This document shows, in pieces, positions 14,191 through 43,476 of a stretch of DNA of 43,476 nucleotides. Made by a program: the position numbers and the translations under genes. Below the pieces are notes generated by a model. It did no database searches, was not told the DNA's origin, and saw only the letters and a list, made by a program, of their open reading frames with translations. Source of the DNA: Klebsormidium nitens (Eukaryota; Plantae; Klebsormidiophyceae); assembly GCA_000708835.1 (NCBI GenBank), contig DF237657.1, positions 1 through 43,476 on the forward strand. The letters are read 5' to 3'. Numbering within the stretch: position 1 is the stretch's first letter; each line of letters opens with the position of its first letter.

Positions 14191-14949
14191 TCTATTGAAG
14201 TATCTACACTACTTCACTCAACATCTCCACTTCAATGTCAAGCTCCCCTTTCCCCGGCTTCTCAACAGTCCTCCTTTGCCACTCCCGGGCCACCTTTTCG
14301 ACTTCGACGATCTCGACGGTTTCTGCAAAGGTTACAACCACTGCAAGGACACACCAATGTCAGCACGGTACAATTGGGAAAAACGAGGAATAGCACAGGC
14401 GAAGAATAGTGCGTGCTCATCATTCGTTCAAAGGAAGTATCTGAAGGCTCCCTTACCTCGGCAGAAACCTGCTTGCGCACCAATATTCTGCCTCAGCTTT
14501 TTCCAACTGTTCACAGTCGTGAATCTCGGTCGCGGCTCTACCCCGGACCAGCACTCTGGGTCGATGTCAATCCTCAAGTCCTTCCCTACTTGTCTGGCTC
14601 GCGGTACTCGATACAATTGTGTGACATGGACGGAGACCGCCCCTGCAAGATGTAAATATAAGCTTGAAAAAGGTCGATACATAAGATTGCGCATGCAACT
14701 GGAGACAATGCTCATGCCAGGTCATTTCGAGCATGTCCGCAGAACGGGCAGAGAGCTCACCTGCATCTCCAGGAGCCTCTGGCGTCTCACCCTCTGCCGG
14801 CTCACCCCCTTCTCCCGTTCTGCAAGGGTTCCTACCTGAAAAAAAATGGAACGGTGTGAATGCGAGACCATCGATCAGTCAAAACCGGACGTTATGAAGC
14901 TCACAGAACAACCACTTTCGACCAACCAACCAATAACGGAACCGTTTAC

Positions 14950-27656: not shown

Positions 27657-27704
27657 CAAGGCCATCCAAAAATAATATGCACATGTTACATTACCATTCA
27701 ACGC

Positions 27705-28166
27705 ATGGACAACCAACATGTATTGCTGTTAGCAGCGGGCTGCGTTCTCCTGTACTTTCTATGGTTGAACTGCTCAGAGTCCTTTGTCGATGAGGGTTTC
27801 AGGTCGGTCAAACAGACTGCAAAGCGTGCCGGCAATGCAGCCGCTTCAGGGGGGAACACCGTTAAAAACATTGCCAAGAAGGGTGTCAAAGGTGCAACAA
27901 AGGCGCTCGGTGGTGGCAAGAAGAAGAGACCACGGGGTGACATGACCGGGCTGACATTCGTTTGCAAGGCTGTCGACTTTGGCAATGTAGGCAGTGCTGG
28001 TAAGATGATTGGGCCCATGGCCCCCAACAAAGGAGCCAAGGGAGCCAAAGGAGTCAAAGCTGGTAAGAGTGCGGGGAAGGACCGAAGAGGCCCCCGCAAC
28101 ACTCCAACAACAGGTCTGGTTGCAGAACGGAACCTCAAGCCGTCCAAGAGGAGAGGAACCCGCTAA
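27705..28166 (+). CDS. Small membrane-anchored Lys/Gly/Ala-rich protein
   Basis: N-terminal hydrophobic helix followed by a highly basic low-complexity region. Confidence 0.6.
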   Translation: MDNQHVLLLAAGCVLLYFLWLNCSESFVDEGFRSVKQTAKRAGNAAASGGNTVKNIAKKGVKGATKALGGGKKKRPRGDMTGLTFVCKAVDFGNVGSAGKMIGPMAPNKGAKGAKGVKAGKSAGKDRRGPRNTPTTGLVAERNLKPSKRRGTR

Positions 28167-29164
28167 GCCTTAGCCTCAACCGCTACAAGTAGCTTGAAGA
28201 GCTCCTTTGACACCCAAGGACCTGTCTCAGAGCAACACCCTGAAGTACAGAAACCGTATTGGACTGTGTTATCCTTGTAGACAATGTTAATAACCGGCAC
28301 ATGCAACCTGCTATCACTCTTTACTGCTCCATGGATGTAGACTGCCTTGGGCGTCTTCCGGACGGTGACCTCTGTCCGAGGTGGTGCAAACGCCTCGACC
28401 TCCCCGTAACGGATCGCCATTGTTGCTTCTTCATCGGTGCAAGGGAAGCCCTGTACCCCAATGCGGCTCATTGGATCACCCGTCAGTAGCAGATGCCCGT
28501 CCCCAGAGCTCTGACAAACAGCCCCGGATCCGGGCCAGATTGTCAGGTTCTTGTCTCCAAAGCTGAAGCGTATCTCCAGCTTTGAGGCAGCATCTCTTGC
28601 TAGCTCCGTCATGAAGGACGGGAATGGTTCCCCGCCAAGGAGAGGCAGCAGCTTGATGTCCACAAAGGCATCCTTGATCGGCCGGTCAAAGTCTGCAAGT
28701 GTCTTGCATGCCATGCTCATCTCATCTGCAACGTGCCCTAAGCGGCGCCATACCCTCGAGAGACAGTCTACAAGGCGGACAAATCTGCCCCCAGTGTGCA
28801 TCTTGTCCCCTAGGGGGCTGTCTCCGTAGATCTCCTCCATGCAGTAGCCCATGTTGAAGAGCCCCTGCACCTTCTCCTCAAAGAGCCTCCGAGCCTTGAC
28901 TGCAGCCTCCTCGTGCCTTGCTGAGCATGCTTGGACCCACACGTGAACGGTCTGAACGTCGCCCACCAGGAGCTCAAGCCTGCAGAGATCACGAGCCTTC
29001 CTCAGGTCAAAGGCCTCCTGCAGGGCCCATGCAAAGTACCGGAGGGCGCTGCACATGTCGCTGGCATGGTCACCCCTGCTTCCAAGACCCTCAATGCAGT
29101 TGTCAACTTGTAGGTCAATCAAGGCTGCCTTGCGGAGCAGGTTGAGAGCTTGTAATCTGGCCAT
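28163..29164 (-). CDS. Hypothetical protein
   Basis: 333-aa ORF; no recognised family. Confidence 0.65.
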   Translation of the reverse strand: MARLQALNLLRKAALIDLQVDNCIEGLGSRGDHASDMCSALRYFAWALQEAFDLRKARDLCRLELLVGDVQTVHVWVQACSARHEEAAVKARRLFEEKVQGLFNMGYCMEEIYGDSPLGDKMHTGGRFVRLVDCLSRVWRRLGHVADEMSMACKTLADFDRPIKDAFVDIKLLPLLGGEPFPSFMTELARDAASKLEIRFSFGDKNLTIWPGSGAVCQSSGDGHLLLTGDPMSRIGVQGFPCTDEEATMAIRYGEVEAFAPPRTEVTVRKTPKAVYIHGAVKSDSRLHVPVINIVYKDNTVQYGFCTSGCCSETGPWVSKELFKLLVAVEAKA

Positions 29165-29471
29165 CCTGAGAGTGTGAGAAGAGACGGGCGAACAGAGAGC
29201 CTTGTCAACCTTGTCTCAGCATCACACGCCACCAGATGCCAGGAACATCCGCCAATCCATGCCATGACTGCCAGCACATGCCAGCATGTTCCTCACTTAG
29301 GTGCTCAGAAGTAATCTCATTTCTCACACACCTCGATGCAGCAACCAGACTTTCTCCTAGAGCCGCTCCGCCCCGCCAGCATCTGTCCTACGGGCTGCGG
29401 CAAGGTACGCATCTGCACAGCCATAGGAACGTTCTGCGTGTTGGATCCAGAGCACGCCAGGGCCGGAATCT

Positions 29472-30305
29472 ATGGAGGACTACGACCTGCTGGAGAACCA
29501 GGACGGGAGGGAGGTGGGCACCAACGAGACGGTGTACAAGGAATGGAAGAGGAAGCTGTACGGATGGAGGCGCGACCACCCTCTCCCAGAGTATGCCAGC
29601 CTTCTGGACAAGATGACACAGTACTTCGAAAGGCACGCGTTCGCTCCAAACAACGAGCTGGAGGTCCGGCTGGGAAAGGTGCTCGAAAGACCAAGGCGCT
29701 TTGAGCCAGGGGTGTCCGCAAACATGTTCTACAAGATTGTGGAAGGCCTCCGGAGCTTCCAGTCCTGGGAAAACGAAGCGGTGACAAGGCACACCGACTA
29801 CATCTGCGGTGAGAAGCGGCTGCGAATGTACGAAGATCCCGGCATGCCCGCTAAGCTAGTGGCCAAACGGTCTCTCGTGTCCCTTGATGTCACCGCCTTG
29901 GGTTCCCCCTTCGACTTCCGCTTCTCTATCGCGAAAGAGAAGAACCTTGAAGCGACGCAACAGGACATTGCTTCCATCACCGCCAACGCGAAGCATGTCC
30001 GGCACAAGGAGCGCATGACTTTTGCCTACAAAGTGTGGCTCTTTGATTTGACAATCGTCCGGACTCAAGGTGGGGTACCTCTGGCACCGTCCGATGACTG
30101 CTTCGAAGACACGTCAGAGGAGAGGAATGGGGGCCGGGTGTACGAGGTGGAGATTGAACTCAGCAACCTTGCAAGCAAGGTGAAGAAGAACTCGTTCAAC
30201 GCAATGAGGCTGGCAGACTCGACGATCCTAAAGTTCTTTGATCTGATGAACTTTGTTGAAGAGGTAAACATGGAGAGGCTAACATTCCAACCGAGCTCAA
30301 AGTAA
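29472..30305 (+). CDS. Stand-alone RNA 5'-triphosphatase (CYTH/triphosphate-tunnel, mRNA capping)
   Basis: NELEVRLG (motif A) and VYEVEIEL (motif C); RHKER..F; a monofunctional form as in chloroviruses. Confidence 0.88.
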   Translation: MEDYDLLENQDGREVGTNETVYKEWKRKLYGWRRDHPLPEYASLLDKMTQYFERHAFAPNNELEVRLGKVLERPRRFEPGVSANMFYKIVEGLRSFQSWENEAVTRHTDYICGEKRLRMYEDPGMPAKLVAKRSLVSLDVTALGSPFDFRFSIAKEKNLEATQQDIASITANAKHVRHKERMTFAYKVWLFDLTIVRTQGGVPLAPSDDCFEDTSEERNGGRVYEVEIELSNLASKVKKNSFNAMRLADSTILKFFDLMNFVEEVNMERLTFQPSSK

Positions 30306-30559
30306 ATCAGGAACACAAAGTCTCGCACAGTCACTAGCGTCCGCCCTGACAACACTGAAAGGGGCTCATCGCAGAGAAAGCGCACCCGTGAGGAGCTTGA
30401 GGTTCTGAGGTTGAAAGTCATGCGCTGGAACGGGAGATTGAAAAAGGTCAAACACGAACAGGCAACAAGCACAAAGGCGCAAACGATGGGTATGGAATGC
30501 AATCCTGATGCTCAGCCTGACCTGACCTGATGTCATCACTATCTGCTACAAAATTATCC

Positions 30560-31040
30560 CTTGCATGATGCGACGATAACACGGAGGCGCAGGTGAATCC
30601 AACCCCCTCCTATATTTAAAAAAGCAATGTCTCAAATTCTGGAATACTTTTGAAACTTGCGCTCCATCTGCGCATCGTCGCAAGGCTGCTGTCAATTACA
30701 AAGACTCTTATCTCATTGGTGGTATGGCTAATCATCACCAACTACTACAAAAGTCATCCCCTGCATGATGCGACGATAACACGGAGGCGCAGGTGATTCC
30801 ACCCCCCTCCTATAGCGAAAAAAGCGGTGTCTCAAATCTTGAAATACTTTTGAAACTTGTGCTCCATCTGCGCATCGTCGCAAGGCCGCTGTCAATCATA
30901 AACACCCCTTGTCTCATGGTGGTATGGTGCGTCATCACGATCTATTACAAAAGTCCTCCCCTACATGATGCGACGATATCACGGAGGCGCAGGCGAATCC
31001 AATCCCCTCGTGTATTGAGAAAAGCAGTGTCTCTACCAGG
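30560..31040. repeat. Tandem repeat with a 200-bp period (about 2.4 copies) ending at the WNK start
   Basis: CATGATGCGACGAT recurs at about 30564, 30764 and 30964. Confidence 0.9.
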
Positions 31041-31046
31041 GGCTTC

Positions 31047-31984
31047 ATGTCCGCAAGCTGCCGAATAACAGATACAAGCCCGAGTGGCAAGTATGTCAGG
31101 TACGCAGAGGTGATTGGTAGAGGTTCGTACAAGATTGTGCACAGAGGCTTTGACAGAGAGCTGGGGATTGAGGTTGCATGGAGTAAGATTGTACTCAGCA
31201 AGTTGGAAGTGAACGAGGAATTCCACGAGCAGATCCAACGGGAGGTTGACCTCCTCAAGATCATAAGATGCAGTAATGTCGTCGAGCTCCTTGATGCATG
31301 GTTTGATCCGGAGCGCAATGAGTTCCACATTGTGACAGAGCTCTTTCCCAGCGGAAGTCTGAAGGACTATCTAAAGCGCCATGGCCATATAGCTCTACCT
31401 GTTGTGAAAAGGTGGACACGGACCCTGCTGGAGGGTCTTGCGTATCTGCATGCGCAGAACCCGCCAATCGTTCACAGAGATGTCAAGTGCGACAACATCT
31501 TCATCAGAGGAGATGTGGGACAAGTCAAACTAGGCCCGGTGACCTTGGCCTGTCGACCCTCAAAAGCAGGTCCTCCATGTCTAGCGTTGTTGGGACACCA
31601 GAATTCATGGCCGTGGAGATGTTCAACTCTGACTATGACGAGAGGGTTGATGTCTACTCCCTTGGAACGTGTGTCCTGGAGATGACAACACTGGAATACC
31701 CCTTTGCAGAGTGCAAAAACATTGCACAGGTCTACCGCAAAGTGATGGAAAGAAAACCGCCAGACTCTCTCAAGCAGGTTCAAGCCCCCGAGCTGAAGGC
31801 CTTTATCACAAGGTGCCTTGCTGGCCGTTCCAGCAGGCCCACAGCCCAGGAGCTCCTGGACGACCCTCTGCTAAGGGATCTGGGGGAACCGCGGCCATCT
31901 TGGTCAGAGCATGAGGCAATTCTTGTCAAGCTCGAACCCATGAGAAAGGAATCAAAACCACTGAGACTCTCCTGCTGTTTCTGA
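31047..31984 (+). pseudogene. WNK: WNK (with-no-lysine) Ser/Thr kinase with an apparent 5-nt insertion at 31533-31537
   Basis: GRGSYKIV (Lys in subdomain I), EVAW, HRDVKCDNIFI; removing GGCCC restores VKLGDLGLST...GTPEFMA. Confidence 0.88.
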
Positions 31985-31988
31985 GGAC

Positions 31989-32489
31989 CTAAAAGAAGAA
32001 GCTGTTGTTGTTCTTGCAAGTCACTTCACGCCCCGCCGTTGCTGCTGTGATGTATGGATTCGAGTAGATGGCGGACTCCCCTACACCTCCTTCTGATTGC
32101 CGCAACTTCCTGCCATAGATCGAATGCACGGGCTCTTGCCATTGCCCGCAACTTGCAACCGGTATTGAGGTGGTATCGTACATAGGCTGGAACTCAGAGC
32201 GTGGTTGCGTGAGCATCTGAGTGGGCCGTCTGTGTGCATATTCCATCTGACGGACGCCTTGCGACCACGGCCCACCCACGATCGGAGGGGGGCGGTAGCG
32301 TCTAGCAGCTTGCCTCCGTTGCAACTCAATCTGGAGTGCTTCGGTGGAGACCCCATCGCAATACCGGCTGATCCCATCCTTGTACATGAGCACTGTCAGT
32401 GTGAGCATGTGCATACAGAGCAGCGAAAGTATGAGGATGACGGTGGACCAAGAGATGTCATTCACCATTCTGGCCCTCTTACATGACAC
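31989..32489 (-). CDS. Hypothetical membrane-anchored protein
   Basis: N-terminal hydrophobic segment STVILILSLLCMHMLTLTVLM. Confidence 0.6.
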   Translation of the reverse strand: MSCKRARMVNDISWSTVILILSLLCMHMLTLTVLMYKDGISRYCDGVSTEALQIELQRRQAARRYRPPPIVGGPWSQGVRQMEYAHRRPTQMLTQPRSEFQPMYDTTSIPVASCGQWQEPVHSIYGRKLRQSEGGVGESAIYSNPYITAATAGREVTCKNNNSFFF

Positions 32490-32506
32490 TCTTGTGTATT
32501 ATTTTT

Positions 32507-33424
32507 TCAACGGTCAACCACCTGAAAGGTGGGGATTTCGGTCGCTCTCTCGTCCACCTTGTCATCTAGCAGCTCCAAAAACGAGCGCTTCCCCGCGCTT
32601 GTCCTCTCCTTCTTGGCATTCTCTTGCTCCCACAATGGCGTACGTCCTTGATTGCTCAAGACAGCGGGGCTCTCTGTGACGGCCCCGATGACAAAAGCAA
32701 ACGCCTGTGCAATCTCCTCCAGCCTTTTCGCACCCGTTATTATGATGCTCCCACTCTTGAACGCCAGAATGGTCGCGCCCGCAAACTTGATGTTGCAGCC
32801 GGCAAAATGATCCGGCTCGTAAAGGCCAAAGACGCCGTACCTCTCCATGACAACATCCCTCAGCGCCTCCAAGTTGATGGGTGCGTTGAGACGGAAATCC
32901 GTGTTCAGCATCTGGACTTTGGCTGACTGGATCTTGACTAGCTTGTCCACCTGTGTGCAATCAGGACGGAGGGCCCTGATTGTGCGCAGGACAACCTTGA
33001 GTGTACAAACGGCCTCCCAGGCACTCCTTGCGCCAGTCAGGTGGAACTTTCCGTTGGCAAACACCTTGCAATTCTTCCGGGTGGTGCCGACCTTCCCAGG
33101 GGTGTAGCGGAAAGACACCTGATTGGTAAACTTTGCCTGCTTCGAGGCCGTTGCGATCATCGAGATTGACCCTAAAGCCGGCTCCGCAGCAACTCTGTCC
33201 GTGATGGCGGACGCCTGCTGAAGCTTCTTGATGTCGATCCCGGAGTCCGTCTGGAAGATGACTGTCATGGTGGACAGGTCTGGCAGGGTGGCAGGCGGCC
33301 CTTCAAGGCCTTTGCGCTGGAGCGTTGCGGCCATTGAGGCCGATGCTGCCCTCACTTCTGCCTTCCACGAATCCACAAAGCTTCTGACAGCCGCTGACCG
33401 AGTGTCCAACACGGGCCCATCCAT
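32507..33424 (-). CDS. TBP: TATA-binding-protein homolog
   Basis: Two TBP repeats: KVFANGKFHLTGA and YEPDHFAGC...ILAFKSGSIIITGAK. Confidence 0.92.
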   Translation of the reverse strand: MDGPVLDTRSAAVRSFVDSWKAEVRAASASMAATLQRKGLEGPPATLPDLSTMTVIFQTDSGIDIKKLQQASAITDRVAAEPALGSISMIATASKQAKFTNQVSFRYTPGKVGTTRKNCKVFANGKFHLTGARSAWEAVCTLKVVLRTIRALRPDCTQVDKLVKIQSAKVQMLNTDFRLNAPINLEALRDVVMERYGVFGLYEPDHFAGCNIKFAGATILAFKSGSIIITGAKRLEEIAQAFAFVIGAVTESPAVLSNQGRTPLWEQENAKKERTSAGKRSFLELLDDKVDERATEIPTFQVVDR

Positions 33425-33467
33425 GCCTTGCCTTCCCACGACCTTTTTTCAGAAGCTAACAGTAAGA

Positions 33468-33836
33468 ATGCAAGCGGTCCACTGGCTGATTGCTGCTGCC
33501 GCGGTCGTCCTCGTGCTTGTAGCCTTCAAGCGAGCACGCAGGCCTCACGCCAGATATTCCTTCACCTTTTACACCCTCCCAGGATGCAAGTACTGCAGGG
33601 AGGCGATGCCTGCATGGGGAGAGTTGCAGAGGGTTTACAGGGGCCCGGCTTTGCTCAAGGAAGTGAACGCATTGCAAGCAAAGCAGGAAGTGAACGAGCT
33701 GGGGATAGATGGCTTCCCTGCGTACGTCCTGTTTGACAGCAATACCGGCTATGCGTACAAGTACGAAGGCGCAAGGACAGCTCGCGCACTCTCACAGTTC
33801 CTAGCAGAGAAGTCCGCTGAAAAAAGGCTTATGTAA
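33468..33836 (+). CDS. Thioredoxin-like protein with N-terminal membrane anchor
   Basis: CKYC active site; IDGFP cis-Pro motif. Confidence 0.85.
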   Translation: MQAVHWLIAAAAVVLVLVAFKRARRPHARYSFTFYTLPGCKYCREAMPAWGELQRVYRGPALLKEVNALQAKQEVNELGIDGFPAYVLFDSNTGYAYKYEGARTARALSQFLAEKSAEKRLM

Positions 33837-33845
33837 AGTAGAGTC

Positions 33846-34394
33846 ATGACTATCCTGCTTGAAGGGGCTGCATGGGCTGGGTCAGCCATCCTCCTGTACC
33901 TCGCTCTCAAGCCTGAGGTGGCCAAGAGCAGGTCAGGGATGTCCTACATCAAGGGGCCCCACGCCCAGGAGTTTATGCTGCTTGTGAATACAGACATAGA
34001 TCGCCTCCTGGAATGGCTCAGAAGCCACCCTGAGCTGCTAGCTGACCGACGGTGGCAAAGGCTCGTCAAACGCTACAAGACAAAGATGCGCCCAATTGCA
34101 GAGGGGGAGGGCGGGGCAGCTTACACTCGAAACAAGTCGGACGTGAGGCTGTGCGTCCCAGAGTCGCTCGAGGAGCGAGACGTCCAGACCGCGTTGTTTG
34201 TCGCCCTCCACGAGCTGGCTCACATCGCCAACGTGAGTTGGGGTCACGACCAGAGCTTCTGGGACACCTTCAGGGACCTGCTCCGGCTTGCCGTGCGAGC
34301 AAAGATTTACAAGAGACGCAACTACAGGAATGACCCAGCTCGGTATTGTGGCCAAGATATTATGAGCCAACCCCTCGATTGGAAGGTCTCTTAA
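33846..34394 (+). CDS. WLM-like zinc metallopeptidase
   Basis: FVALHELAH...GHDQSFW (HExxH...H). Confidence 0.85.
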   Translation: MTILLEGAAWAGSAILLYLALKPEVAKSRSGMSYIKGPHAQEFMLLVNTDIDRLLEWLRSHPELLADRRWQRLVKRYKTKMRPIAEGEGGAAYTRNKSDVRLCVPESLEERDVQTALFVALHELAHIANVSWGHDQSFWDTFRDLLRLAVRAKIYKRRNYRNDPARYCGQDIMSQPLDWKVS

Positions 34395-34571
34395 GCCCCT
34401 TGTAGCAGCCAGCGGGTGCCATCAATGCGCTACAGGTGCCATGTGAGCCCGCTCAACGCCACTCTGAGGGCTCACGCCTTGACCAGAGCAACGTAGTACT
34501 TCTCCACCTCGAGGAGCGCTGGCTCCGACTTCGACCTTCCGGATGCTGGAGGGCTCTGGAACGCCCTCGTG

Positions 34572-35181
34572 TTATCCCCGTCTTTCACCACTAAAGTCCG
34601 CTTCGTTATGTGTGCAAGGACAAAGAGGAATCCTCTGGTGTCCACTCATGTCCACGAGTTCACTCATCCGTGAGCGACGTCTGCGTCTCCTGCTTCGGTT
34701 GTCTCTGGTGCCTTGACTCACATGTTGGTCGTTGGCAGTCCCTCCATCTCCGAAATCTATGGGCTGGTTGTCCGAGTGATTGTGCGTGCCTGGCAATCGA
34801 CTTGGACCAGCTCCAGAACTTAACCCTGTGACGTGAGGCCCACTGTCTGCGGCTTTCTGCTTTCCTTTCTGAGCACGGGTGCTTCGAGTGGCACCGATGA
34901 TAAAATTCCGGTAGCCCCTTTTCTCAAGCTGGCGTGCAAGGCCTGCATCATCATACAAGTCCCGAATGTAGTTCACCATGCTTACGTCTGGGTGTAAAGT
35001 TGCTCTTCCTTACGTACTTGGCAAGCATCCGGCTCTTTGCAAGCGTTTTTCGCAGGAAAGGTTGAAGCAGAGGTCTTATAACTCCGTACACCCCTCGTTG
35101 CAGGCTGGTGTTTGGGTAGCCGGCGTCCACAAAAGACTGCCTGGTATACTTGTTCAGAGTTGCATCAGTGACTGCTGCCAT
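34572..35181 (-). pseudogene. Diverged histone H3-like fold with a long basic C-terminal extension; frameshift at about 34989
   Basis: TLNKYTRQSF...SLQRGVYGVIR...FL...RKSNFTPxDVSMVNYIR aligns with H3 PFQRLVREIA...RFQSSAVMALQ...YL...KRVTIMPKDIQLARRIR if 2 nt are restored. Confidence 0.6.
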
Positions 35182-35204
35182 TCTTTATCTGTTTTATATT
35201 CAAG

Positions 35205-35438
35205 ATGGATGAAATAAATCCGAGGAAGGGTCCCTCCAAAAGGTGCATTCAGGCCTTGCTTGGGACCAGATTGAAACCGTCACAGTTCCAGGCAATGCGA
35301 GAAACCTTCAACTTGATCCTCGAGAAGACCTTTGAGGTTGCACAGGCAGAGGCTCGCCACAGGCATCAGGTAGGAGCCATAAAGATCTTCCCTCAAGACG
35401 TCCGAGGGGCGCTCAGAGACCTTGCAATCGGAAGGTGA
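35205..35438 (+). CDS. Diverged, tailless histone H4-like protein
   Basis: GPSKRCIQAL...FQAMRETFNLILEKTFEVA...IFPQDVRGALR versus H4 GITKPAIRRL...YEETRGVLKVFLENVIRDA...VTAMDVVYALK. Confidence 0.6.
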   Translation: MDEINPRKGPSKRCIQALLGTRLKPSQFQAMRETFNLILEKTFEVAQAEARHRHQVGAIKIFPQDVRGALRDLAIGR

Positions 35439-35478
35439 TTGCTTAGGGCCAAGCGCACAGGCAGATGGGCAGCACCTC

Positions 35479-36147
35479 ATGGCCAGCGCAATCTCCCCAC
35501 GGGTTGTCCGGCTTCTCGAGAGACAGAGGCACAAGACCCCGTACCAGCAGCACCTCGCGAAGCTGGCACCTGGAGGGCGGGGCCTCACGCCCAGCCCGAT
35601 GCCAAACATTGAAGCAGCCCGGCACGGCCTGCGCTATGAACGAGAGGCTATAGAGAGATTCCAACAGATAACGGGCATTAGGGTCCTTGATGTCGGCCAT
35701 GTGGTTCACGAGCGCTTCGATTGGCTCTCTTGTGTTCCCGACGGAATCACCGTTGATGGCAGGGTGGCCGAGATAAAGTGCCCATACTACCGCCGGATCG
35801 TACCAGGGATCCCCAGCCACTGTGTGAAGCAGCTTCAGATTGCAATGGAGGTCACGGACCTCGACGAGGCTATCCTCGTGCAGTACAAACCAGCCAGTGT
35901 CTTTGGAGCCGAGGAGATTATGATTTCGACCCTGGCTCGGGACAGGACTTGGATCCACAGGAACTGGGACAGCCTGCACAAGAAGGTTGGCCGCCGTCGT
36001 TTCCGGCCGCGGCCTGATATGGATGACATTTTCGTACCTGTGACCAAAGCACCATGGCATCCAACACATCCTCAAGTAAACCAAAGTCCACACGATGGAG
36101 CGATATGGTTGACTCCCCCCCAGGACCCATCGACCCGAAGATCCTAA
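35479..36147 (+). CDS. YqaJ-like (lambda exonuclease family) viral recombinase/nuclease, apparently lacking motif I
   Basis: HGLRYEREA, SCVPDGIT..G...EIKCP, QLQIAMEV. Confidence 0.85.
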   Translation: MASAISPRVVRLLERQRHKTPYQQHLAKLAPGGRGLTPSPMPNIEAARHGLRYEREAIERFQQITGIRVLDVGHVVHERFDWLSCVPDGITVDGRVAEIKCPYYRRIVPGIPSHCVKQLQIAMEVTDLDEAILVQYKPASVFGAEEIMISTLARDRTWIHRNWDSLHKKVGRRRFRPRPDMDDIFVPVTKAPWHPTHPQVNQSPHDGAIWLTPPQDPSTRRS

Positions 36148-36275
36148 AGGGGCTACAATACAGCTTTGGGAAGCCCCTGACGGAGGAGGAGTTCAAGGCT
36201 CAGCAGGCCAAGGGAGGGGCACGAGTAGCAAAGAGCTTGGACCTGCGGGACATTATGCGCAAAGGTGGTGATTAG
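36054..36275 (+). CDS. Small hypothetical protein
   Basis: 73-aa ATG ORF overlapping the YqaJ tail. Confidence 0.4.
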   Translation: MASNTSSSKPKSTRWSDMVDSPPGPIDPKILKGLQYSFGKPLTEEEFKAQQAKGGARVAKSLDLRDIMRKGGD

Positions 36276-36327
36276 GCACGCACGGGCTTACGGTCAAGGC
36301 TCTTTTTCTGGCACTCTACTTTCATCA

Positions 36328-36858
36328 ATGGCAGGGGAACCGCCACTCCGTCTCTTTGCAAGGCAGCAGTTTTCGAAGCTCTTTGATCAACCTCCAGAGT
36401 CCGGCATGGTCATCAACGCCGAGGTAGGGGTGTACAACGCTGCGGTCAAGGGCTGCAGCAGCCAGTTTGGGGCGAGGGCATGCACTTGGGCCGATCCCCG
36501 CTTCAAGAGCAAGTACAAAGAGAAGCTCCGGTCTCTCCTCTTCAACCTCAGAAACCCAAAGAACCCAGCTTTCCTCGATAGAGTGAGATCAAAGGAGATA
36601 GGGTGTAGGCACCTCGCTTCCTTGACCCCAGAGGATATGTTCCCGGAAAATTGGGCCAGTCTCAAGGCGAAACTTGCGAAGAAGCACGTCTTTTCTGCCG
36701 ACCTTCTGGATGACGTCCCCGACAACCCGTTGCACGCTTGCAGCCACTGCAAGTCCAGGAAGATTACTACGTACGAACTCCAGACTCTAGCAGCAGACCA
36801 GTCTACCACGACGTACCTGCTCTGTCAATCCTGTTCCCATTGTTGGAAGATTGTCTAA
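36328..36858 (+). CDS. TFIIS: Transcription elongation factor TFIIS homolog with an altered acidic hairpin (QTLAADQS)
   Basis: Central domain KYKEKLRSLLFNL..PKNP.F and C-terminal CxxC...QT..AD..TT...CxxC..W ribbon. Confidence 0.9.
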   Translation: MAGEPPLRLFARQQFSKLFDQPPESGMVINAEVGVYNAAVKGCSSQFGARACTWADPRFKSKYKEKLRSLLFNLRNPKNPAFLDRVRSKEIGCRHLASLTPEDMFPENWASLKAKLAKKHVFSADLLDDVPDNPLHACSHCKSRKITTYELQTLAADQSTTTYLLCQSCSHCWKIV

Positions 36859-37277
36859 CTCTGCAGCTTGTTTATCATATTCCGATGGTTTGCATTTGCT
36901 TCATTATGAGCTTGCCTTGCATGGTTCGCCACGTGGTCAACTACCTTTGCCGGAGCACCCGCGTTAGAGGCATTGATTGCGGCATCGAGGGACAGTCTGG
37001 CCGCGTTCTTACTTGCCTCCAGAGATGCAATGGATGCCTGGACCGCCTGCTCGTGGTCTCCGTTCTGCAGAGCGTCCTGTGCAATATCATGCATGGCGGT
37101 TGCTGCATGCATCTCATCCACTGCCCCAGTCGCACTGCCAACGGCCTTGGACGCGGATATGTGGTCCAAGGCCGTCCGGGCGGCTGTGTTTGCTATGCTC
37201 GCTATCTCGATTGCATGCTTTGCACTCTTGCGGGCGCTCTGAACGGCTTGAGAAGCAGCCGCGCGAATGAAGTCCAT
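36855..37277 (-). CDS. Ala-rich helical hypothetical protein
   Basis: 140-aa ATG ORF with strongly biased helical composition. Confidence 0.6.
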   Translation of the reverse strand: MDFIRAAASQAVQSARKSAKHAIEIASIANTAARTALDHISASKAVGSATGAVDEMHAATAMHDIAQDALQNGDHEQAVQASIASLEASKNAARLSLDAAINASNAGAPAKVVDHVANHARQAHNEANANHRNMINKLQS

Positions 37278-37442: not shown

Positions 37443-37964
37443 CTAACACTTCTTCAGAACACAGTCTGTGGGCACCCACTGCTTCTTAGTCCCCCCATCG
37501 TACAATTTGCAGTAGCCTTCCTTGACACATATCGATTGGATTGTCTCTGTATCATCCGGGCTGTAATAAAGATTTGCGAGTAACCGGCCATACTTGTCGA
37601 AATCCAATGCATGCAGCCAGATGATTGAGACATTCTCCTTGAGGAGTCTTACAATGTCCTTTTTGATGTAAGTGCCATCCACTTCGAAAACGCCCGGTGC
37701 AATCAAGGATAGCATGCGATTCCGGGCTTTGATTGCCCACTCTTGCACACTCTTGTCCCTGCTCTTCATCTCTGGGCTGTCAATGCCCATGACCCGCACG
37801 ATAATCTTGTGCACGTCATCCTTTTGAAAGGGAAACACAACCTTCAGTGTATCACAATCGTACAATTCTACTACACGACACCATGTCTTTAGACCAGCCA
37901 ATGAGAAGAGCTTTGTGCTGCTGTCATACTTGGAAAGGAGGTCTGTTGCCTCCTCTTGATTCAT
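37443..37964 (-). CDS. SNase-like (thermonuclease) nuclease
   Basis: YDCDT (canonical YDGDT), RVMGIDSPE, FDKYGRLLA. Confidence 0.88.
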   Translation of the reverse strand: MNQEEATDLLSKYDSSTKLFSLAGLKTWCRVVELYDCDTLKVVFPFQKDDVHKIIVRVMGIDSPEMKSRDKSVQEWAIKARNRMLSLIAPGVFEVDGTYIKKDIVRLLKENVSIIWLHALDFDKYGRLLANLYYSPDDTETIQSICVKEGYCKLYDGGTKKQWVPTDCVLKKC

Positions 37965-38015
37965 TCTTATGTTTGTGGAAAAAAGCTCAGGAGAACACTT
38001 CTGCCAGGGAGCCGA

Positions 38016-38960
38016 CTAAAAACACTTATTCTGATAAGTCAACTCAACACCGTATCGTTCGAAGACGCGTCTTGCTTTCTTTAACTGCTCTTTTTCATCA
38101 ACATCTTCATCCAGAATCAAATGAACTCTCTTTTTGTGCTGAGGGAACGACTCTGCATAACCAAGCACCTGTCCTAGTGCGTGCAAGTAATTACTGCTTC
38201 GTTTCACCTCTATGATCTTACTCTGAGTGAGCACATCAACCCTACCGTATTCACAGGCTACCTCTACCTGGCCTCCCTCCTTTTCAGCGAGTTGGTCTCT
38301 GATGGTTGCCTCTATCGTGTCAGCCCCTTTTCGTGGTTGTAGATGTGCCAAGGAATACTTGTAGTCCTCACTAATCTGTTGAATGAGCCCACGGGCTTGC
38401 TCAATCCATTTGCTGACCTTGACCTCAAAGTCAGCACTTATCCACATTGCCAGATGCGTGGCAAGTCTTGGGTGTACAAACGTTCCTCTCTGGCAATTTG
38501 GCCCACTTCTAATAGAATCAATCAAGGCTACATCAGGTAGCTCCTCTGACAGGATTGCAAAACAGTCTTTGAATGCTTGAGATGAGTTGTAATGGTTCCA
38601 GGTCTTTCCTGCAGAGTGGCACATCTGCGTTGCTGACACGTACCCATCACTCAGACGCATCTCTGTGATCATGTTCCCATCATCCCCCCTCAAAGCATCC
38701 ACAAACCCCCTTGCTTGCTCCATTTCTTCGTCGGTAGGTGCTGCCGCTTCCTTGGAGGCTTGGAAGCAAGCCATGTCCACCTCTCGAAGGTCATCTTCAA
38801 ACTTCCAGATGAAGCCATCTCTCAGGGCAAGCTTGGAGGCAGCCAGTGCCAAGCTGGCTGCAGGAACACCTGTAGCCGTCGCGGCATCCCGCTTTGTCGA
38901 GTACCTGGTGACGGAGCCGTTCGACGAGATTGCAAGCAGGGGTCTTGACGGTGGCGCCAT
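38016..38960 (-). CDS. NUMOD1-like + KilA-N + PD-(D/E)xK nuclease fusion
   Basis: YSTKRDAATATGV...GFIWKF; DGYVSATQMC...GTFVHPRLATHLAMWISADF; GRVDVLT...IIEVK...ALGQVLGY. Confidence 0.82.
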   Translation of the reverse strand: MAPPSRPLLAISSNGSVTRYSTKRDAATATGVPAASLALAASKLALRDGFIWKFEDDLREVDMACFQASKEAAAPTDEEMEQARGFVDALRGDDGNMITEMRLSDGYVSATQMCHSAGKTWNHYNSSQAFKDCFAILSEELPDVALIDSIRSGPNCQRGTFVHPRLATHLAMWISADFEVKVSKWIEQARGLIQQISEDYKYSLAHLQPRKGADTIEATIRDQLAEKEGGQVEVACEYGRVDVLTQSKIIEVKRSSNYLHALGQVLGYAESFPQHKKRVHLILDEDVDEKEQLKKARRVFERYGVELTYQNKCF

Positions 38961-39259
38961 CTTGTTGAGCTTGTGGGATTGACTTGTTTGCAAGGACTTC
39001 CTTTTCTGAAGGACGTGCTTGTGAAAGGATCCAACTTTATACTCATCCAATTGGTGCTGGACCTTTCGTGATGTGCCTGGCAGCACTTGGCGGAAAGTGT
39101 GTGACAAATCACAGGACCGCGCCAGAATGCGCCAACTGCTGTCCCATGGCGCCACCATCAAAGCCATATAAAAGGCATTTCTGGGGCTGCTAATCTTCAT
39201 TTCAAGGGTAGCACTTTGAATGTCGAGCAAGCACTTGGGGTAAGACCAGAGGTCAAAAG

Positions 39260-39682
39260 TTTCAGTTTTCCTCCAAGGGACCTTGCATACATACATATCA
39301 GCAAGCCTCCGGAAAAGTCAGAACTCTCATACTACAATCTGTTATACTTTTTTTCTTCTCCAGGGAAGGAATTATAACAGATTAGCAGTACAGAGTTTCT
39401 CATTGGGTTCCCAAGTGCCAATATGTATGTAAGTAAGGACATACCTCCAAAAGATGCTAATATTGTAATTGACTTTTTGGAGAAGAGAATATAACAGATT
39501 AGTAGTACAGAGTTTTCTCTTTGGTTTCCAATTGCTGATATGTATGTATGTAAGGACATACCTCCAAAAGATGCTAATATTGTAATTGACTTTTTGGAGA
39601 AGAAAATATAACAGATTAGTAGTACAGAGTTTTCTCTTTGGTTTCCAATTGCTGATATGTATGTATGTAAGGTCATACCCAG
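39260..39682 (-). repeat. Repeat element copy 2: 117-bp tandem units with 24-bp inverted terminal motifs
   Basis: ATAACAGATTAG at 39374, 39491 and 39608; GACCTTGCATACATACATATCAGC mirrors GCTGATATGTATGTATGTAAGGTC with one mismatch. Confidence 0.9.
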
Positions 39683-39745: not shown

Positions 39746-40387
39746 TCAGCTCAGCGAATTCCGGCGAGCCAGAGCAGACCGCAGCTCAGCCTGGAGATTA
39801 TCCCTGCACTTGGAGACTGACAGCGTATGCACCCACCTTGCCAGCTCATCTGCATGCACCTCGGCAGCCACGCGGACCCTGTCCGAACAAAAGTAGCGTT
39901 TGATTTCAACATGCCGGACAGATACGGGGCTTCCACTCTCAATGAGCGCTGTGTTCATCGCTTTGAGCGTCCGCACGGCCCAAGAGACCCGTTCCGGCTC
40001 CTCGCTCAAAAGCTTTTTCGCATCACTGTACGAACTGAAGGGCGCTTTTGAGCGCAGGATCGAAGTTAACACCCGGCCATCTGCCGAATCAAAGAGTGCA
40101 GCTACAGGGTCGGGCAGTGGAAGGGACGACGTCCGTTTGAGGGGCGGAGGCGGGGGCGCAGGGGGTTGAGCAGCTACCGGCTGCTTGCGTATCTCCTCAT
40201 GCAATTTGGCAATCTGGGCCTCACACGCGAAGACTTTCTCTGCGAGTTTCTTCACTTCAAGGCGCAGATCTGCCACCTCTTGACGAGGTCTGTGAATCCT
40301 GCAGAATGCGTTCTGACCGCATTTTACGCGACAGGGCCGTGGCTTTCTCGTGAGCCTGTCAACCACCTGGTACGGGCAGCCCGCCAT
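39746..40387 (-). CDS. Hypothetical protein: N-terminal C3H finger, coiled coil, Pro-rich linker
   Basis: CPY...PCRVKCGQNAFCRIH followed by a heptad region. Confidence 0.65.
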   Translation of the reverse strand: MAGCPYQVVDRLTRKPRPCRVKCGQNAFCRIHRPRQEVADLRLEVKKLAEKVFACEAQIAKLHEEIRKQPVAAQPPAPPPPPLKRTSSLPLPDPVAALFDSADGRVLTSILRSKAPFSSYSDAKKLLSEEPERVSWAVRTLKAMNTALIESGSPVSVRHVEIKRYFCSDRVRVAAEVHADELARWVHTLSVSKCRDNLQAELRSALARRNSLS

Positions 40388-40392
40388 GTCAT

Positions 40393-40713
40393 CTACACGT
40401 CTTTTGTGAGGGCCTGGATACGCTCAAAGAATGAGAATTGAACCCCAAAGAGCATTAGTTCGAAAAACATCGATGCGACTGTACCCTCATGGTCTTTTTC
40501 GGTGTCCGGACTGTATACGACTTCCAACGATGCAATTAGAACAAAGAGAAAGAGTTGTAAAAGAGTCACAACAACTCTGGCGAGGTCAGTGTGCAACGAG
40601 GTCTTTGCAAGGCGTTTGAACATGCGATCACACGCAAAATCTAACACAACCCCCATTCCAGTGCCTGCAGCAGCATGAAGCAAGCAGTTGCCAAAAAAGG
40701 ACACTCCACCCAT
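40393..40713 (-). CDS. Small multi-pass membrane protein
   Basis: 106 aa with three hydrophobic segments. Confidence 0.6.
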   Translation of the reverse strand: MGGVSFFGNCLLHAAAGTGMGVVLDFACDRMFKRLAKTSLHTDLARVVVTLLQLFLFVLIASLEVVYSPDTEKDHEGTVASMFFELMLFGVQFSFFERIQALTKDV

Positions 40714-40745: not shown

Positions 40746-42836
40746 TCACCCGGAGATCATGTGCTCGAGAAGAGTCTCGCGCAACGAATCCAGGTTTGCA
40801 GGCTTTACCAAGACGCCAGCCATTCCAACTTCCAAGCACCGGTCAAACGTTGCAGATCTCTGGTCAGCGGTCAGGGCAACAACGGTCCGTGGCCTCTTCG
40901 ATTCTGGCAAGGCTGCAATCCTCCTCATAGTCTCAAAGCCGTCCCAGCCAGGCATGGTGAGATCCAAGAAGCAAAAAACGAATCTTGTCAACTCCATTTC
41001 CAGCAGCCGCAAGCAGGCCTCCCCGGATTCTACTGTCTTTGGAGAGCACCCCAGCTTGCGGAGCATCTTGGCAGTTACAAGACGGTTCACACTGTTGTCG
41101 TCCACAACAAGCACACGCATGCCTTTGAGGCTGCCTACAGACTCACTCCGCTTGATGATGGTCCGTTCCACGTCATGACTTACCCGCCCAAGGTGGATAT
41201 AGAACGATGCAGTTGTTCCTAGCCCAATACCCGGGCTTTGGAGCCACACGGCTCCTCCCATGAGGCGTGCCAGGTGTCTGCAGATCGAGAGACCCAGTCC
41301 CATCCCTCCAGCTTTGCGCCCAGAATCCAGCTGTCGGAATCGCTCACAGAGGCTGCCTATTGCTGAAGCTTCGACCCCAATGCCATCATCAACCACGTCC
41401 ACTCGAATCCGGTGTGTCGTACTGGTGGGTGGAGCCTCCTCCTCCCAGACTCGAAATGTTATCGTCGACTTTGTAAACTTGAGTGCATTGTTCAGGAGAT
41501 TCAAACACATCTGCATCGTCCGCTTTGCATCTCCGTCCACATATTGAGGCAAGTTATTGGCTTCTACAGTGAATCTGTATCCAGCCTCCCTTGCCATGGG
41601 CTCTACCATGCGAGATGCCTCACGAACCAGGTTCGTCAGATCAAACGGTGCCGTTCGAAGCTGAAAGTCCCCTCGATTGATCCGTGAAACATCCAGAACG
41701 TCGTCGATAAGAACGGAAAGGAGTCCTGCACTCGTGGAGATGGTATTGACCATCTCCTGGTCCCCTCTCGAAAGCGAGTTGCTGTGCTGCAGCACCGATG
41801 CTATGGCCAAGACGGCATGGAGAGGGGTCCGCATCTCGTGGCTCACCACCGCAAAAAACTCTTCGCGTGCTTTGATCCCCGTCTCAGCTGCCAAGCGCGC
41901 CTCCTTGAGCTCACGGTTCTGGGCCAGCAGATCGCGCAGGATGTGAGCGTGAGAGATTGCAACGCTGATCTGACTGGTTGCAATCTCCAAGACCTCCCAA
42001 TCGTAATCGGTCCAGTTGGAGTCCTTGGCGAGTGCAAGGATGTACTTCTGTGGTAATTGCTGCATTTCGCCCTGGAATGTAAGCTGAGGCAACACCAGAG
42101 ATACCGCATAAGCTCCATGGCGGTGGCCAGATCCAAGCAGGCACGTCCTCGGATCCAGGGGAACTGGTCCCTGAGATGAGATGGTTGTTTGCACCTCGTC
42201 CAAGCCGATCGGAATGACAGTACGGCTCCCCTTCAGTGAACCAACGGCACTCACCACATGCATAGCGTCGGGATGTGGACCAGTCGACCAGACAGCACAA
42301 TCAGTCAGGTTCAAGACCTTGGAAAGCTCCACAATTGTAGTCTCCAAGATGGTCATGGTGTCCAGAGACGAGTAGATGCCCACTGAGAGCATGCGCACAC
42401 TGTGTGTAGCAGCATATTTGCGCCTTAGCAATCCGACCTCTTGATCCAACTCATCTGCTTTCAACTTCAAGTAATGCTCTCGTTCTCGCAATCGCAAGAA
42501 GCGAGGAATCTCCCAGAACAGGAATACTGTCGTAACACCAGAAACCAGTGCCGTGAGACATTTGGCTAGGGTACTACGTGCCACAGACGAATAAGTATCC
42601 ATGAGGATCAACTGGCGGGCTGATAGCAGGTGTGTGCAGCCACAGAACAGAATAAAGAGCACGAATTGCACGAGTGTCCCTTTCTGAGGAAGCTCCTTGA
42701 ACTTGAGGCCAAAGTATATGAGCTCGATAGGGATGGAAAAGTAGGCCACCGAAATGATGGTGTCTGCCCACGCTTGGAGTTGCCCAAGGCTGTGGGAATA
42801 CGTCCACATTCTACCGAGGCACGCACATTGAACCAT
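40746..42836 (-). CDS. ETR1: Ethylene receptor, ETR1-type hybrid histidine kinase (ethylene-binding TM domain, GAF, HisKA, HATPase, receiver), intronless, 696 aa
   Basis: MVQCACL (Cys4/Cys6), ADTIISVAYFSIPIELIYF, FILFCGCTHL (Cu-binding Cys/His), SHEMRTPLH, NLLNNALKFT, DDGIG, GLGLSIC, VLVVDDN...FLDLTMP...LVKP. Confidence 0.95.
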   Translation of the reverse strand: MVQCACLGRMWTYSHSLGQLQAWADTIISVAYFSIPIELIYFGLKFKELPQKGTLVQFVLFILFCGCTHLLSARQLILMDTYSSVARSTLAKCLTALVSGVTTVFLFWEIPRFLRLREREHYLKLKADELDQEVGLLRRKYAATHSVRMLSVGIYSSLDTMTILETTIVELSKVLNLTDCAVWSTGPHPDAMHVVSAVGSLKGSRTVIPIGLDEVQTTISSQGPVPLDPRTCLLGSGHRHGAYAVSLVLPQLTFQGEMQQLPQKYILALAKDSNWTDYDWEVLEIATSQISVAISHAHILRDLLAQNRELKEARLAAETGIKAREEFFAVVSHEMRTPLHAVLAIASVLQHSNSLSRGDQEMVNTISTSAGLLSVLIDDVLDVSRINRGDFQLRTAPFDLTNLVREASRMVEPMAREAGYRFTVEANNLPQYVDGDAKRTMQMCLNLLNNALKFTKSTITFRVWEEEAPPTSTTHRIRVDVVDDGIGVEASAIGSLCERFRQLDSGRKAGGMGLGLSICRHLARLMGGAVWLQSPGIGLGTTASFYIHLGRVSHDVERTIIKRSESVGSLKGMRVLVVDDNSVNRLVTAKMLRKLGCSPKTVESGEACLRLLEMELTRFVFCFLDLTMPGWDGFETMRRIAALPESKRPRTVVALTADQRSATFDRCLEVGMAGVLVKPANLDSLRETLLEHMISG

Positions 42837-43070
42837 GCTTGAACCATGCAGTATGAGTAGGTGTTTTGTCTGAGCAACTGGACGCGAAGCCACACTGGCC
42901 CCAAACACTGGCCCCTAAACTGGCCCCCAAATGCATGGCATGTAACCAAAGTTGAAAGAATATAACCATGCGGCTCATGTGGGGCAGCACCCTGTAACCA
43001 TTCGTACTCCTTTCAAAACACCCATGACACACAGTGTAACCATGGCTATAACCTTAGACCCGCTTTGTAA

Positions 43071-43100
43071 CCAGATTAATTTCGGCCGAAATTAATCTGG
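43071..43100. other. Perfect 30-bp palindrome
   Basis: CCAGATTAATTTCGGCCGAAATTAATCTGG equals its own reverse complement. Confidence 0.95.
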
Positions 43101-43476
43101 CCATCTCGCTTTTCATGACAAACGTTGTGCCCGTTCTAGCAATTGAGATGCTAAAACGTCTTTTTCTACTGTAACCTTACACTTCCTGGTTATGCCAACC
43201 TTACTAATTTCATAGCAAGGTTACAAAAGTTGACAAAAATTCATATGCTATTTATGTAACAACACGTAACCTTTTAGCAACGATTGTGCAATTGAGATAC
43301 GAGGGCGCATAATTCGCACGTTGGTGGTTACACTTCCAAGTCTGGGTTGAAAGGTGGTTATGCTACAGTTGGTTGACTCGGTGCCTGATTCGGTCTTGCC
43401 CACATCCGTACAAGTCTTACTTTATTATAAGTGCTATTAGCTCTAATAATTAGATTATTACCATTTTCGCCCAAAC

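Follow-up and report, generated by a model that had tools for sequence, protein, structure and literature searches.

The window, i.e. the whole stretch of 43,476 nt that we have analysed and to which all positions refer, carries on its minus strand (40746–42836) a gene for an ethylene-receptor-type hybrid histidine kinase: the intact open reading frame (ORF) of 696 codons runs from an ATG to a TGA with no internal stop, and its product contains, in this order, an ethylene-binding domain, a GAF-like domain, a HisKA domain, a HATPase_c domain and a receiver domain. The Pfam domains and the best matches, which are streptophyte receptors, bear out the first-pass annotation, which had recognised here an intact, uninterrupted and intronless receptor of the plant type; the best full-length cellular match has an E-value of 2.5e-117, and chance resemblance to ethylene receptors is, at the level of sequence, not an issue. 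An alternative, longer ORF that starts with a GTG reaches position 42908; we have placed the start at the ATG at 42836, because the homologues on two metagenome contigs (L001 and L002) begin at the same Met-Val-x-Cys-x-Cys.

The stop codon of the receptor gene (40746–40748) is followed on the same strand by an ATG at 40713, with 32 nt in between, which is the distance to the next co-oriented gene that had been annotated; the receptor is also, as had been annotated, the last ORF before a non-coding stretch, since no ATG-initiated ORF of at least 70 aa has been found in the 640 nt located 5' of its ATG (42837–43476). Upstream of the receptor, this stretch contains a conserved non-coding element (42940–43160, no strand assigned), where GTAACC repeats flank a perfect 30-nt palindrome (43071–43100); eight of the 16 GTAACC sites of the window occur within 42942–43331. 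Over 192 nt, the element shares 78% identity with a gap between genes of the metagenome contig L086 that is likewise non-coding; L001 matches it in part, and the comparison with these two relatives has revealed a paired change in both arms of the palindrome.

Downstream of the receptor, two conserved ORFs on the minus strand, neither of which belongs to a known family, complete a receptor-linked trio: a hydrophobic ORF of 106 aa (40393–40713), 65–70% identical to the ORFs that adjoin the receptor on L001, L003 and L086, with no match in Pfam or PHROG, and an ORF of 213 aa (39746–40387), 39–61% identical to the syntenic ORFs of the same three contigs, with no match in Pfam. The trio is separated by an SNase-like gene, a KilA-N gene and one small ORF (37443–39676, minus strand), which are missing at this place in L003, while L086 has a weak KilA-like counterpart of the KilA-N gene, from a block of virus-type genes (26757–37277, no strand assigned) that has been delimited by Pfam and by its ORF-by-ORF collinearity with L003, at 34–73% identity. 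The genes of this block are a TFIIB-like gene, two unknown ORFs, an mRNA 5'-triphosphatase, a Ser/Thr kinase and another unknown ORF, together with TBP-like, thioredoxin-like, metallopeptidase-like, YqaJ, TFIIS and TPR-like genes.

The window as a whole is occupied by dense, intron-free ORFs on both strands (coding density 77% for ATG-initiated ORFs), one of which encodes a C5-methylase; a protein with the EsV-1-7 cysteine motif is encoded as well, and a PIP-type aquaporin is a plant-type gene located in the same element as the receptor. The codon usage and GC3 of the receptor match those of the neighbouring genes. A Pfam scan of the window ORFs has found none of the hallmark genes for the major capsid protein, DNA polymerase B, A32 ATPase, D5 primase-helicase and VLTF3, with the 43 kb representing part of an element; no tRNA has been found in the window, no phosphotransfer (HPt) or response-regulator partner gene near the receptor, and no upstream promoter word shared among 38 ORFs; the unknown ORFs have given no match in either PHROG or the PDB.

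The ethylene-binding domain (42489–42788, minus strand; residues 17–116) consists of three hydrophobic helices and is recognised by the Pfam profile ETR1_N (1.6e-22; score 80 bits, cut-off 27; match to positions 2–97 of the 97 in the profile). Three hydropathy peaks occur at about residues 26–45, 49–79 and 88–111, and AlphaFold predicts N-terminal helices at residues 15–48, 52–77 and from 82 onward, with a pLDDT of only 55–74 in this region. The C4/C6 pair (42819–42827, minus strand) is located just upstream of the domain. The GAF-like domain (41955–42353, minus strand; residues 162–294) is shorter than that of the plant receptors: its Pfam score of 19.8 bits lies under the cut-off of 22.4, its alignment to the plant GAF domain needs deletions, and an alpha/beta fold is predicted by AlphaFold at residues 179–271. 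The histidine-kinase core (41190–41870, minus strand) comprises HisKA at residues 323–389 (55.9 bits) and HATPase_c at residues 435–549 (72.3 bits), and matches the ETR1 catalytic domain (PDB ID:4pl9, 1.8e-23) and the ERS1 dimerisation domain (PDB ID:4mt8, 2.3e-16). The receiver domain (40773–41114, minus strand; residues 575–688; Response_reg, 67.5 bits) matches the ETR1 receiver (PDB ID:1dcf, 6.8e-20).

Direct reading and alignment have located in the binding region the residues C4, C6, D25, Y32, I35, P36, I62, C65 and H69, where Tyr32, Ile35, Pro36 and Ile62 are positions known from ETR1 mutagenesis; K92 aligns with Lys91 of ETR1. The kinase contains H333 in the H-box, N450 in the N-box, D483/G485/G487 in the G1 box (DxGxG) and G511/G513/G515 in the G2 box (GxGxG), and the receiver contains D579/D580, D625 and K678, so that the protein has the ETR1-type receiver with its phospho-accepting aspartate, not the ERS type. 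Every residue that the first-pass annotation had listed as kept from ETR1, i.e. Cys4/Cys6, Asp25/Tyr32/Cys65/His69, the phospho-histidine, the N, G1 and G2 boxes and the receiver aspartate, occupies its aligned column. The roles of Asp25, Cys65, His69 and Lys91 in ETR1 have been described (PMC10266040). This residue pattern is identical to that of the aligned subfamily-1 receptors (Erythranthe ETR1, Sphagnum, Mesotaenium), while the subfamily-2 proteins of the same alignment do not have complete H, N, G1 and G2 motifs.

Comparison with known systems places the protein next to the streptophyte subfamily-1 receptors of the Arabidopsis ETR1/ERS1 type, represented by Erythranthe ETR1 and by Sphagnum, Mesotaenium and Selaginella proteins: in common are the domain order, the cysteine pair, the copper/ethylene residues and the Lys91 equivalent, as well as the complete H, N, G1 and G2 boxes and the receiver aspartate. 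Streptophyte receptors are also its best cellular matches, with 40% identity over the full length and 41–47% in the binding domain; unlike them, the gene of the viral array is intronless, its GAF region is shorter and its product is about 40–70 residues shorter overall. Bacterial and cyanobacterial ethylene-binding-domain proteins (e.g. Thermoleptolyngbya P0138; SynEtr1 type) also conserve the binding-domain residues, but their domain identity is 34–36%, their downstream architecture is different, and they are separated from the viral and streptophyte receptors with 100% bootstrap support.

Known viral histidine kinases are only 14–28% identical to the receptor. Those of other giant-virus metagenome genomes (klosneuviruses, Marseillevirus LCMAC and Sylvanvirus) have the kinase and receiver folds in common with it, at 15–28% identity, and their entries in the structural search show no sign of an ethylene-binding domain. 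The hybrid histidine kinases of the phaeoviruses EsV-1 and FirrV-1 are likewise hybrid sensor kinases that giant viruses encode and that have a membrane N-terminus; a role in sensing the state of the host has been put forward for them, and phaeoviral kinases have been proposed as sensors for viral activation (PMC12993054). A BFVD structural search has given only 14–21% identity to them, no Ectocarpus or phaeovirus protein occurs among the sequence matches of the receptor, and that identity has led us to reject classical phaeoviruses as the source of the kinase. Insertions of the Physcomitrella type have also been rejected as a source, with a GC content of 34% there and 53% in the window. The earlier statement that no virus-encoded ethylene receptor is known holds in part: in the literature that we have searched, “ethylene receptor” occurs in no paper together with “giant virus” or “NCLDV”, but the Phaeoexplorer study (doi 10.1101/2024.02.19.579948) lists an “ethylene-binding-domain-like” class of histidine kinases, noted in brown-algal viral insertions, with a viral-related clade in the Ectocarpales.

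At least 10 homologues of the receptor, 59–79% identical to it, are located on densely packed, intron-free metagenome contigs, and relatives at this level have been found only on gene-dense contigs (L001, L002, L003 and L086) where synteny is kept. Contig L003 is collinear with the window over 26.7–42.8 kb, through the TFIIB, capping triphosphatase, kinase, TBP, YqaJ and TFIIS genes; the receptor-linked trio is found again on L001, L003 and L086, flanked on both sides by viral-type genes. The proposed position of the receptor within a virus-like gene array has thus been confirmed on independent contigs, with regard to both its two neighbours and the block. Searches of the IMG/VR viral contigs with the receptor protein and with the clade alignment have returned no relative, and a metagenome scan has returned only generic bacterial kinases, 29–38% identical over the kinase core; exact-sequence comparison of the receptor and of ten window proteins has yielded no recorded match. 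As for the virus family, the low-confidence triphosphatase model (pLDDT 51) has its best matches among giant-virus (NCLDV) capping enzymes from many families, at no more than 23% identity; its sequence search has given no named close kin, so no family has been assigned, and the TFIIB/TBP/capping set of the window and its relatives has no named close kin either. Another receptor gene, also intron-free but very divergent, adjoins a YqaJ gene on contig L087 and hints that receptors of this kind may have been captured more than once.

The viral receptor clade is under strong purifying selection: between viral copies, pN is 0.19–0.28 against a pS of about 0.75 (saturated) in every domain of the receptor. 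The copper/ethylene-binding, kinase and receiver residues are invariant across the full-length viral copies, the exception being the Lys91 equivalent, which is a threonine in the L002 copy; the N-terminal cysteine pair is also present in L001, L002, L003 and P0008.

Neighbour-joining trees with 200 bootstraps, whose sampling leaves aside chlorophyte, early streptophyte-algal, fungal, amoebozoan, diatom and brown-algal receptor-like sequences, support the viral receptor clade with 100% and the separation of viral and streptophyte receptors from the bacterial ones with 100%, and place the viral clade outside a crown of the sampled Zygnematophyceae and land plants with 96%. In these rough trees, the viral clade is the sister of the streptophyte ethylene receptors. 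The position outside the crown, the neighbour-like codon usage and the saturation of synonymous sites between viral copies together point to an old acquisition of the receptor and not to a recent land-plant capture, and the notion of a captured land-plant ETR1 is not supported; that the capture took place by way of an mRNA, as had been proposed, can only be inferred.

We consider it probable, at roughly 0.6, that the gene belongs to a virus lineage and encodes a subfamily-1-type ethylene receptor that would act as a ligand-responsive sensor rather than as a mere decoy, because every full-length viral copy keeps the residues for ligand binding and for the phosphorelay unchanged. The putative receptor would enter an internal membrane via its three N-terminal helices and dimerise via Cys4/Cys6; Cu(I) would be held by Cys65 and His69, aided by Asp25, and ethylene would be bound there, with a link between Asp25 and Lys92 relaying the signal to the active histidine kinase. 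The kinase would then phosphorylate H333 and, subsequently, D625 of its own receiver, from where the phosphate could pass to phosphotransfer proteins and response regulators of the host, and the receptor may also act through a CTR1-like partner of the host. In the infected cell, or in one with a latent infection, signalling would in this way be coupled to the level of ethylene, a cue of stress or development.

Among the alternatives to such a sensor, the one that survives best concerns the state of this particular copy: the window may derive from a giant virus inserted into the genome of a eukaryote, where the receptor would be carried along without being transcribed and would owe its intact look solely to the young age of the insertion. 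Inserted giant-virus regions are usually silent, and the window is interrupted by N at four places (1,631 in total) and is therefore a scaffolded draft assembly; the Ser/Thr kinase gene (31047–31984) and the aquaporin gene are each read in two frames, with one frame change apiece; gene-poor stretches occur at 7–9 kb and 22.5–24.3 kb; the observed/expected CpG ratio is 0.53–0.9; and an out-of-frame upstream ATG, created by a short tandem duplication, precedes the receptor start. The receptor copy may lie within an endogenised element and, given the gapped draft, the two split-frame genes and the upstream ATG, may be decaying or silent. However, 14 of the approximately 16 ORFs common to the window and L003 are full length, and no host junction or host-type gene has been seen in the window; we regard a silent relic as a serious possibility that falls short of being probable, and it would concern one copy, leaving the conservation across the lineage unaffected.

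It is also conceivable that the viral protein is a constitutive damper, i.e. that an extra receptor lowers the sensitivity of the infected cell to its own stress ethylene, with ligand sensing and phosphorelay both dispensable. Plant ethylene receptors are negative regulators that repress the response when unliganded, the viral protein has the same architecture and residue pattern as ETR1, and viruses often retain receptor copies as modulators. A pure damper would need neither the binding nor the catalytic residues, and the invariance of D25, C65, H69 and all the kinase and receiver residues in the viral clade, with every domain constrained, counts against this explanation, which we find unlikely.

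We give still less credence to the possibility that the N-terminal domain responds not to ethylene but to copper status, to redox or to a different small unsaturated molecule, which some non-plant proteins with this domain may do. The host may neither make nor use ethylene, and ethylene-binding-domain proteins with no assigned role are present in cyanobacteria, fungi, amoebae and diatoms (PMC6324907); yet every copper/ethylene-binding residue of ETR1 is present in the viral receptor, whose nearest relatives are the streptophyte receptors and not the bacterial proteins. Lastly, that the receptor belongs to the host and merely borders an insertion, a caveat of the first-pass annotation that stems from the receptor being the last ORF before the 640 nt of non-coding window end, is highly improbable in view of the recurrence of the trio between viral-type genes on L001, L003 and L086, the conservation of the non-coding tail on L086 and L001, the composition shared with the neighbouring genes and the identity of only 35–40% to the closest cellular receptors.

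Returning to the ligand-responsive sensor, a wider reading of its biology may be offered tentatively, at rather less than even odds: an undescribed giant-virus lineage, probably of green-lineage (streptophyte-related) hosts, would for a long time have had a functional ethylene receptor, from which it would read the stress or development of the host to set its own programme (e.g. latency versus production), feeding into the two-component relay of the host. Sensor kinases are known from giant viruses, but to our knowledge nobody knows what those detect; in the present case, the ligand chemistry of the sensor domain is well understood and the residues that it requires are kept across the viral clade, which turns the idea that viruses sense the state of their host into a concrete, checkable claim. 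The finding also touches the early history of ethylene signalling, with a viral clade that branches beside the streptophyte receptors and not within the land plants, and the presence of plant-type genes (the receptor and the PIP-type aquaporin) in one element indicates an unsampled virus–host system. Judged from the sequences, an entire lineage of viruses appears to possess a sensor of its own for a gaseous plant hormone; if true, no earlier viral receptor for such a hormone would be known.

The receptor that we have examined is encoded on the minus strand by a single open reading frame of 696 codons, which runs from an ATG at 42836 to a TGA at 40746 with zero internal stops. Its ETR1_N domain (residues 17-116) scores 80 bits in Pfam against a cut-off of 27, and the HisKA, HATPase_c and Response_reg domains are each far over their cut-offs; a GAF match at residues 162-294 scores under the Pfam threshold. 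The catalytic, dimerisation and receiver portions have counterparts among PDB fragments of Arabidopsis ETR1 and ERS1. The AlphaFold model, of medium confidence (mean pLDDT 74), has three helices at the N-terminus; its other parts are a long coiled coil, a small domain of alpha/beta type and the folds of the kinase and the receiver.

The key residues have been identified by direct reading and by alignment with the plant, algal and cyanobacterial proteins obtained from our searches: C4, C6, D25, Y32, I35, P36, I62, C65 and H69 are kept at the N-terminus; Lys 92 falls in the column of ETR1 Lys91 (the functional roles of ETR1 Asp25, Cys65, His69 and Lys91 are described in PMC10266040); the kinase motifs are present as H333 of the H-box, N450 and the G1 and G2 glycines; and the receiver retains D579/D580, D625 and K678. 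This pattern is exactly that of the subfamily-1 receptors of the same alignment, whereas the subfamily-2 proteins aligned with them have lost the kinase motifs that the viral receptor retains. The first-pass annotation had described an intact ETR1-type frame whose stop lies 32 nt from the next same-strand ATG downstream; all the ETR1 residues that it named are found, and the spacing is reproduced.

ATG-initiated ORFs on both strands cover 77% of the window, which is interrupted by four N runs (3065-3395, 11673-12115, 18743-18846 and 20636-21388); these mark a scaffolded draft assembly and give rise to blocks that look GC-poor and, in mechanical ORF lists, to several long ORFs that are spurious. 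The recognisable genes concern transcription and mRNA (TFIIB-like, TBP-like, TFIIS, mRNA 5'-triphosphatase), nucleases and DNA binding (YqaJ, KilA-N, SNase-like), signalling and redox (Ser/Thr kinase, thioredoxin-like) and chromatin (C5 cytosine methylase, methyl-CpG-binding domain, PHD finger, RING finger), besides an EsV-1-7 cysteine-motif protein, a PIP-type aquaporin and an ATG8-like protein; the 43-kb window lacks genes for capsid, polymerase, packaging ATPase, primase and VLTF3. The GC3 of the receptor (0.60), its CpG ratio and its codon usage are inside the range of the window's other genes, and its RSCU correlation with the pooled neighbours is 0.63.

The PHD-finger, methyl-CpG-binding-domain and C5 cytosine methyltransferase genes, located at 57-797, 13724-14839 and 24312-25436, constitute a small set of readers and writers for chromatin and methylation in one element. 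An autophagy-type gene is also located in the viral array: the ATG8/ubiquitin-like ORF at 2610-3023 (minus strand; Pfam ATG8, 29.8 bits), which adjoins an assembly gap. The ORF at 3604-4068 (minus strand) carries three EsV-1-7 cysteine-rich motifs (Pfam 1.4e-15), familiar from phaeoviruses and brown algae; this protein, together with weak matches to DUF5763 in the window and to DUF5755 and DUF5767 on two gene-dense contigs (L001 and L002) with relatives of the receptor, may tie the lineage to algal viruses.

The window's copy of the receptor may sit in an inserted, decaying element, a reading to which three features point: the gaps of the draft; the kinase and aquaporin genes, each lying in two frames with one frame change apiece; and a tandem duplication at the receptor start site that creates an out-of-frame upstream ATG. 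The Ser/Thr kinase gene (31047-31984), with two overlapping frames, has a single 306-aa ORF as its counterpart on the related contig L003, and its frame change may stem from decay or from an error in the draft assembly; that of the aquaporin gene (6389-7226, minus strand) could alternatively be a very short intron. The duplication, 11 nt long and covering the start codon, is not seen in L001; the upstream ATG starts an overlapping reading frame about 80 codons long and could lower translation of this copy.

Upstream of the receptor, positions 42961-43141 match a non-coding gap of contig L086 (78% identity over 192 nt) and, partially, L001; this conserved match includes a 30-nt perfect palindrome, with a paired change in both arms in L086. 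The region 42892-43331, where a 13-nt unit occurs in three tandem copies together with eight GTAACC hexamers (half of the window's total), is a possible regulatory or replication element.

In the full-length search, receptors with 59-79% identity are restricted to two JGI metagenomes, several assemblies from Logan and one from ENA, where they lie on intron-free contigs densely packed with genes, and the next matches are land-plant receptors at 31-35%. Among 1.8 billion cluster representatives, the best cellular full-length matches are an angiosperm ETR1 (40% identity, E 2.5e-117) and receptors of Mesotaenium (38%), Spirogloea (39%), Selaginella, Sphagnum and conifers. Taken by itself, the binding domain shares 41-47% identity with land-plant receptors versus 34-36% with cyanobacterial proteins. 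In rough neighbour-joining trees (Kimura distances, 200 bootstraps), whose sampling is limited to viral copies, Zygnematophyceae, land plants and bacteria, the viral clade is monophyletic (100% bootstrap), viral and streptophyte receptors group against the bacterial proteins with either half of the protein (100%), and the sampled Zygnematophyceae and land plants group to the exclusion of the viral clade at full length (96%). From these groupings and identities, the receptor is judged to be of streptophyte type, yet no recent land-plant capture; of the proposed capture of a host receptor, the plant type is supported, a land-plant source is not.

A second, very divergent, intron-free receptor gene (L087:1697-3805, Logan SRR14092358; 36% identity), with a full GAF domain, branches in the trees closer than the main viral clade to the receptors of streptophytes; it lies beside a YqaJ gene 38% identical to that of the window, and a triphosphatase copy with 94% identity to the window's (L004) comes from the same run. 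The aquaporin, which among solved structures is most similar to plant PIP2 proteins (E about 2e-31), is a second plant-type membrane protein of the element, and as such a further hint that the host is of the green lineage. In Klebsormidium, genomes and transcriptomes have been reported to contain giant-virus core genes with phycodnavirus affinity (PMC5294986), which we regard as a lead to the host rather than a finding.

Across the eleven aligned sequences of the viral clade, five or six of which are full length, the H-box and the N, G1 and G2 regions show no variation at all; in the sequences that include the N-terminus, the binding-domain residues are invariant too, apart from a Thr at the Lys91-equivalent position in the L002 copy. 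Compared with three full-length relatives, the window's receptor has 0.19-0.28 non-synonymous differences per site and about 0.75 synonymous differences per site, the latter saturated, alike in each receptor domain; by this measure, the receptor is held under constraint through a long divergence inside the viral lineage. A constitutive damper is the less favoured function, as it could do without ethylene binding and without phosphotransfer, while the residues for both are strictly retained; a ligand-responsive sensor is favoured for the same reason. Such a sensor might hold down host stress responses or time the viral programme, the second of these being the role suggested for kinases of phaeoviruses (PMC12993054).

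The window from 26.7 to 42.8 kb is collinear with L003, ORF by ORF, in the order TFIIB, two unknown ORFs, triphosphatase, kinase, unknown ORF, TBP, thioredoxin, peptidase-like, YqaJ, small ORF, TFIIS, TPR-like, 213-aa ORF (39746-40387), 106-aa ORF (40393-40713) and receptor; the last three, all on the minus strand, are found again as a trio on L001 and L086, and viral-style ORFs also continue beyond the far side of the receptor on L001, L003 and L086. The caution that the receptor could be a host gene at an insertion edge is therefore very unlikely to apply, given the recurring trio, the viral-style ORFs on both sides and the conserved non-coding tail. Between the collinear block and the trio, the window has an extra segment relative to L003 (37443-39676; SNase-like, KilA-N and a small ORF), which suggests that this segment is mobile or variable. 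On L086 (JGI 3300060284), the closest relative, an N-terminal receptor fragment 88% identical to the window's and a second copy without a single ORF lie at ~6.5-11.6 kb, separated by small opposite-strand ORFs, which indicates that the receptor is duplicated or disrupted in that genome.

Among predicted structures of viral proteins, the receptor is matched best by histidine kinases from giant-virus metagenome genomes and from EsV-1 and FirrV-1, with a low identity of 14-28%. The view that no virus-encoded ethylene receptor is on record stands in so far as, among the papers covered, "ethylene receptor" occurs together with neither "giant virus" nor "NCLDV"; texts naming Nucleocytoviricota and ethylene do so mostly through EDTA, and the exception, the Phaeoexplorer study (doi 10.1101/2024.02.19.579948), qualifies it with an "ethylene-binding-domain-like" histidine-kinase class that includes a viral-related clade in Ectocarpales. 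Kabbara et al. (PMC6324907) report viral kinases from Ectocarpus, as well as homologues of the receptors from diatoms, amoebae and early fungi. The proteins of both studies are absent among the sequence matches to the receptor, so the viral clade is at most their distant relative. Virus-encoded sensor kinases are already known; in this one, the sensing part is an ETR1-type module that is conserved in full.
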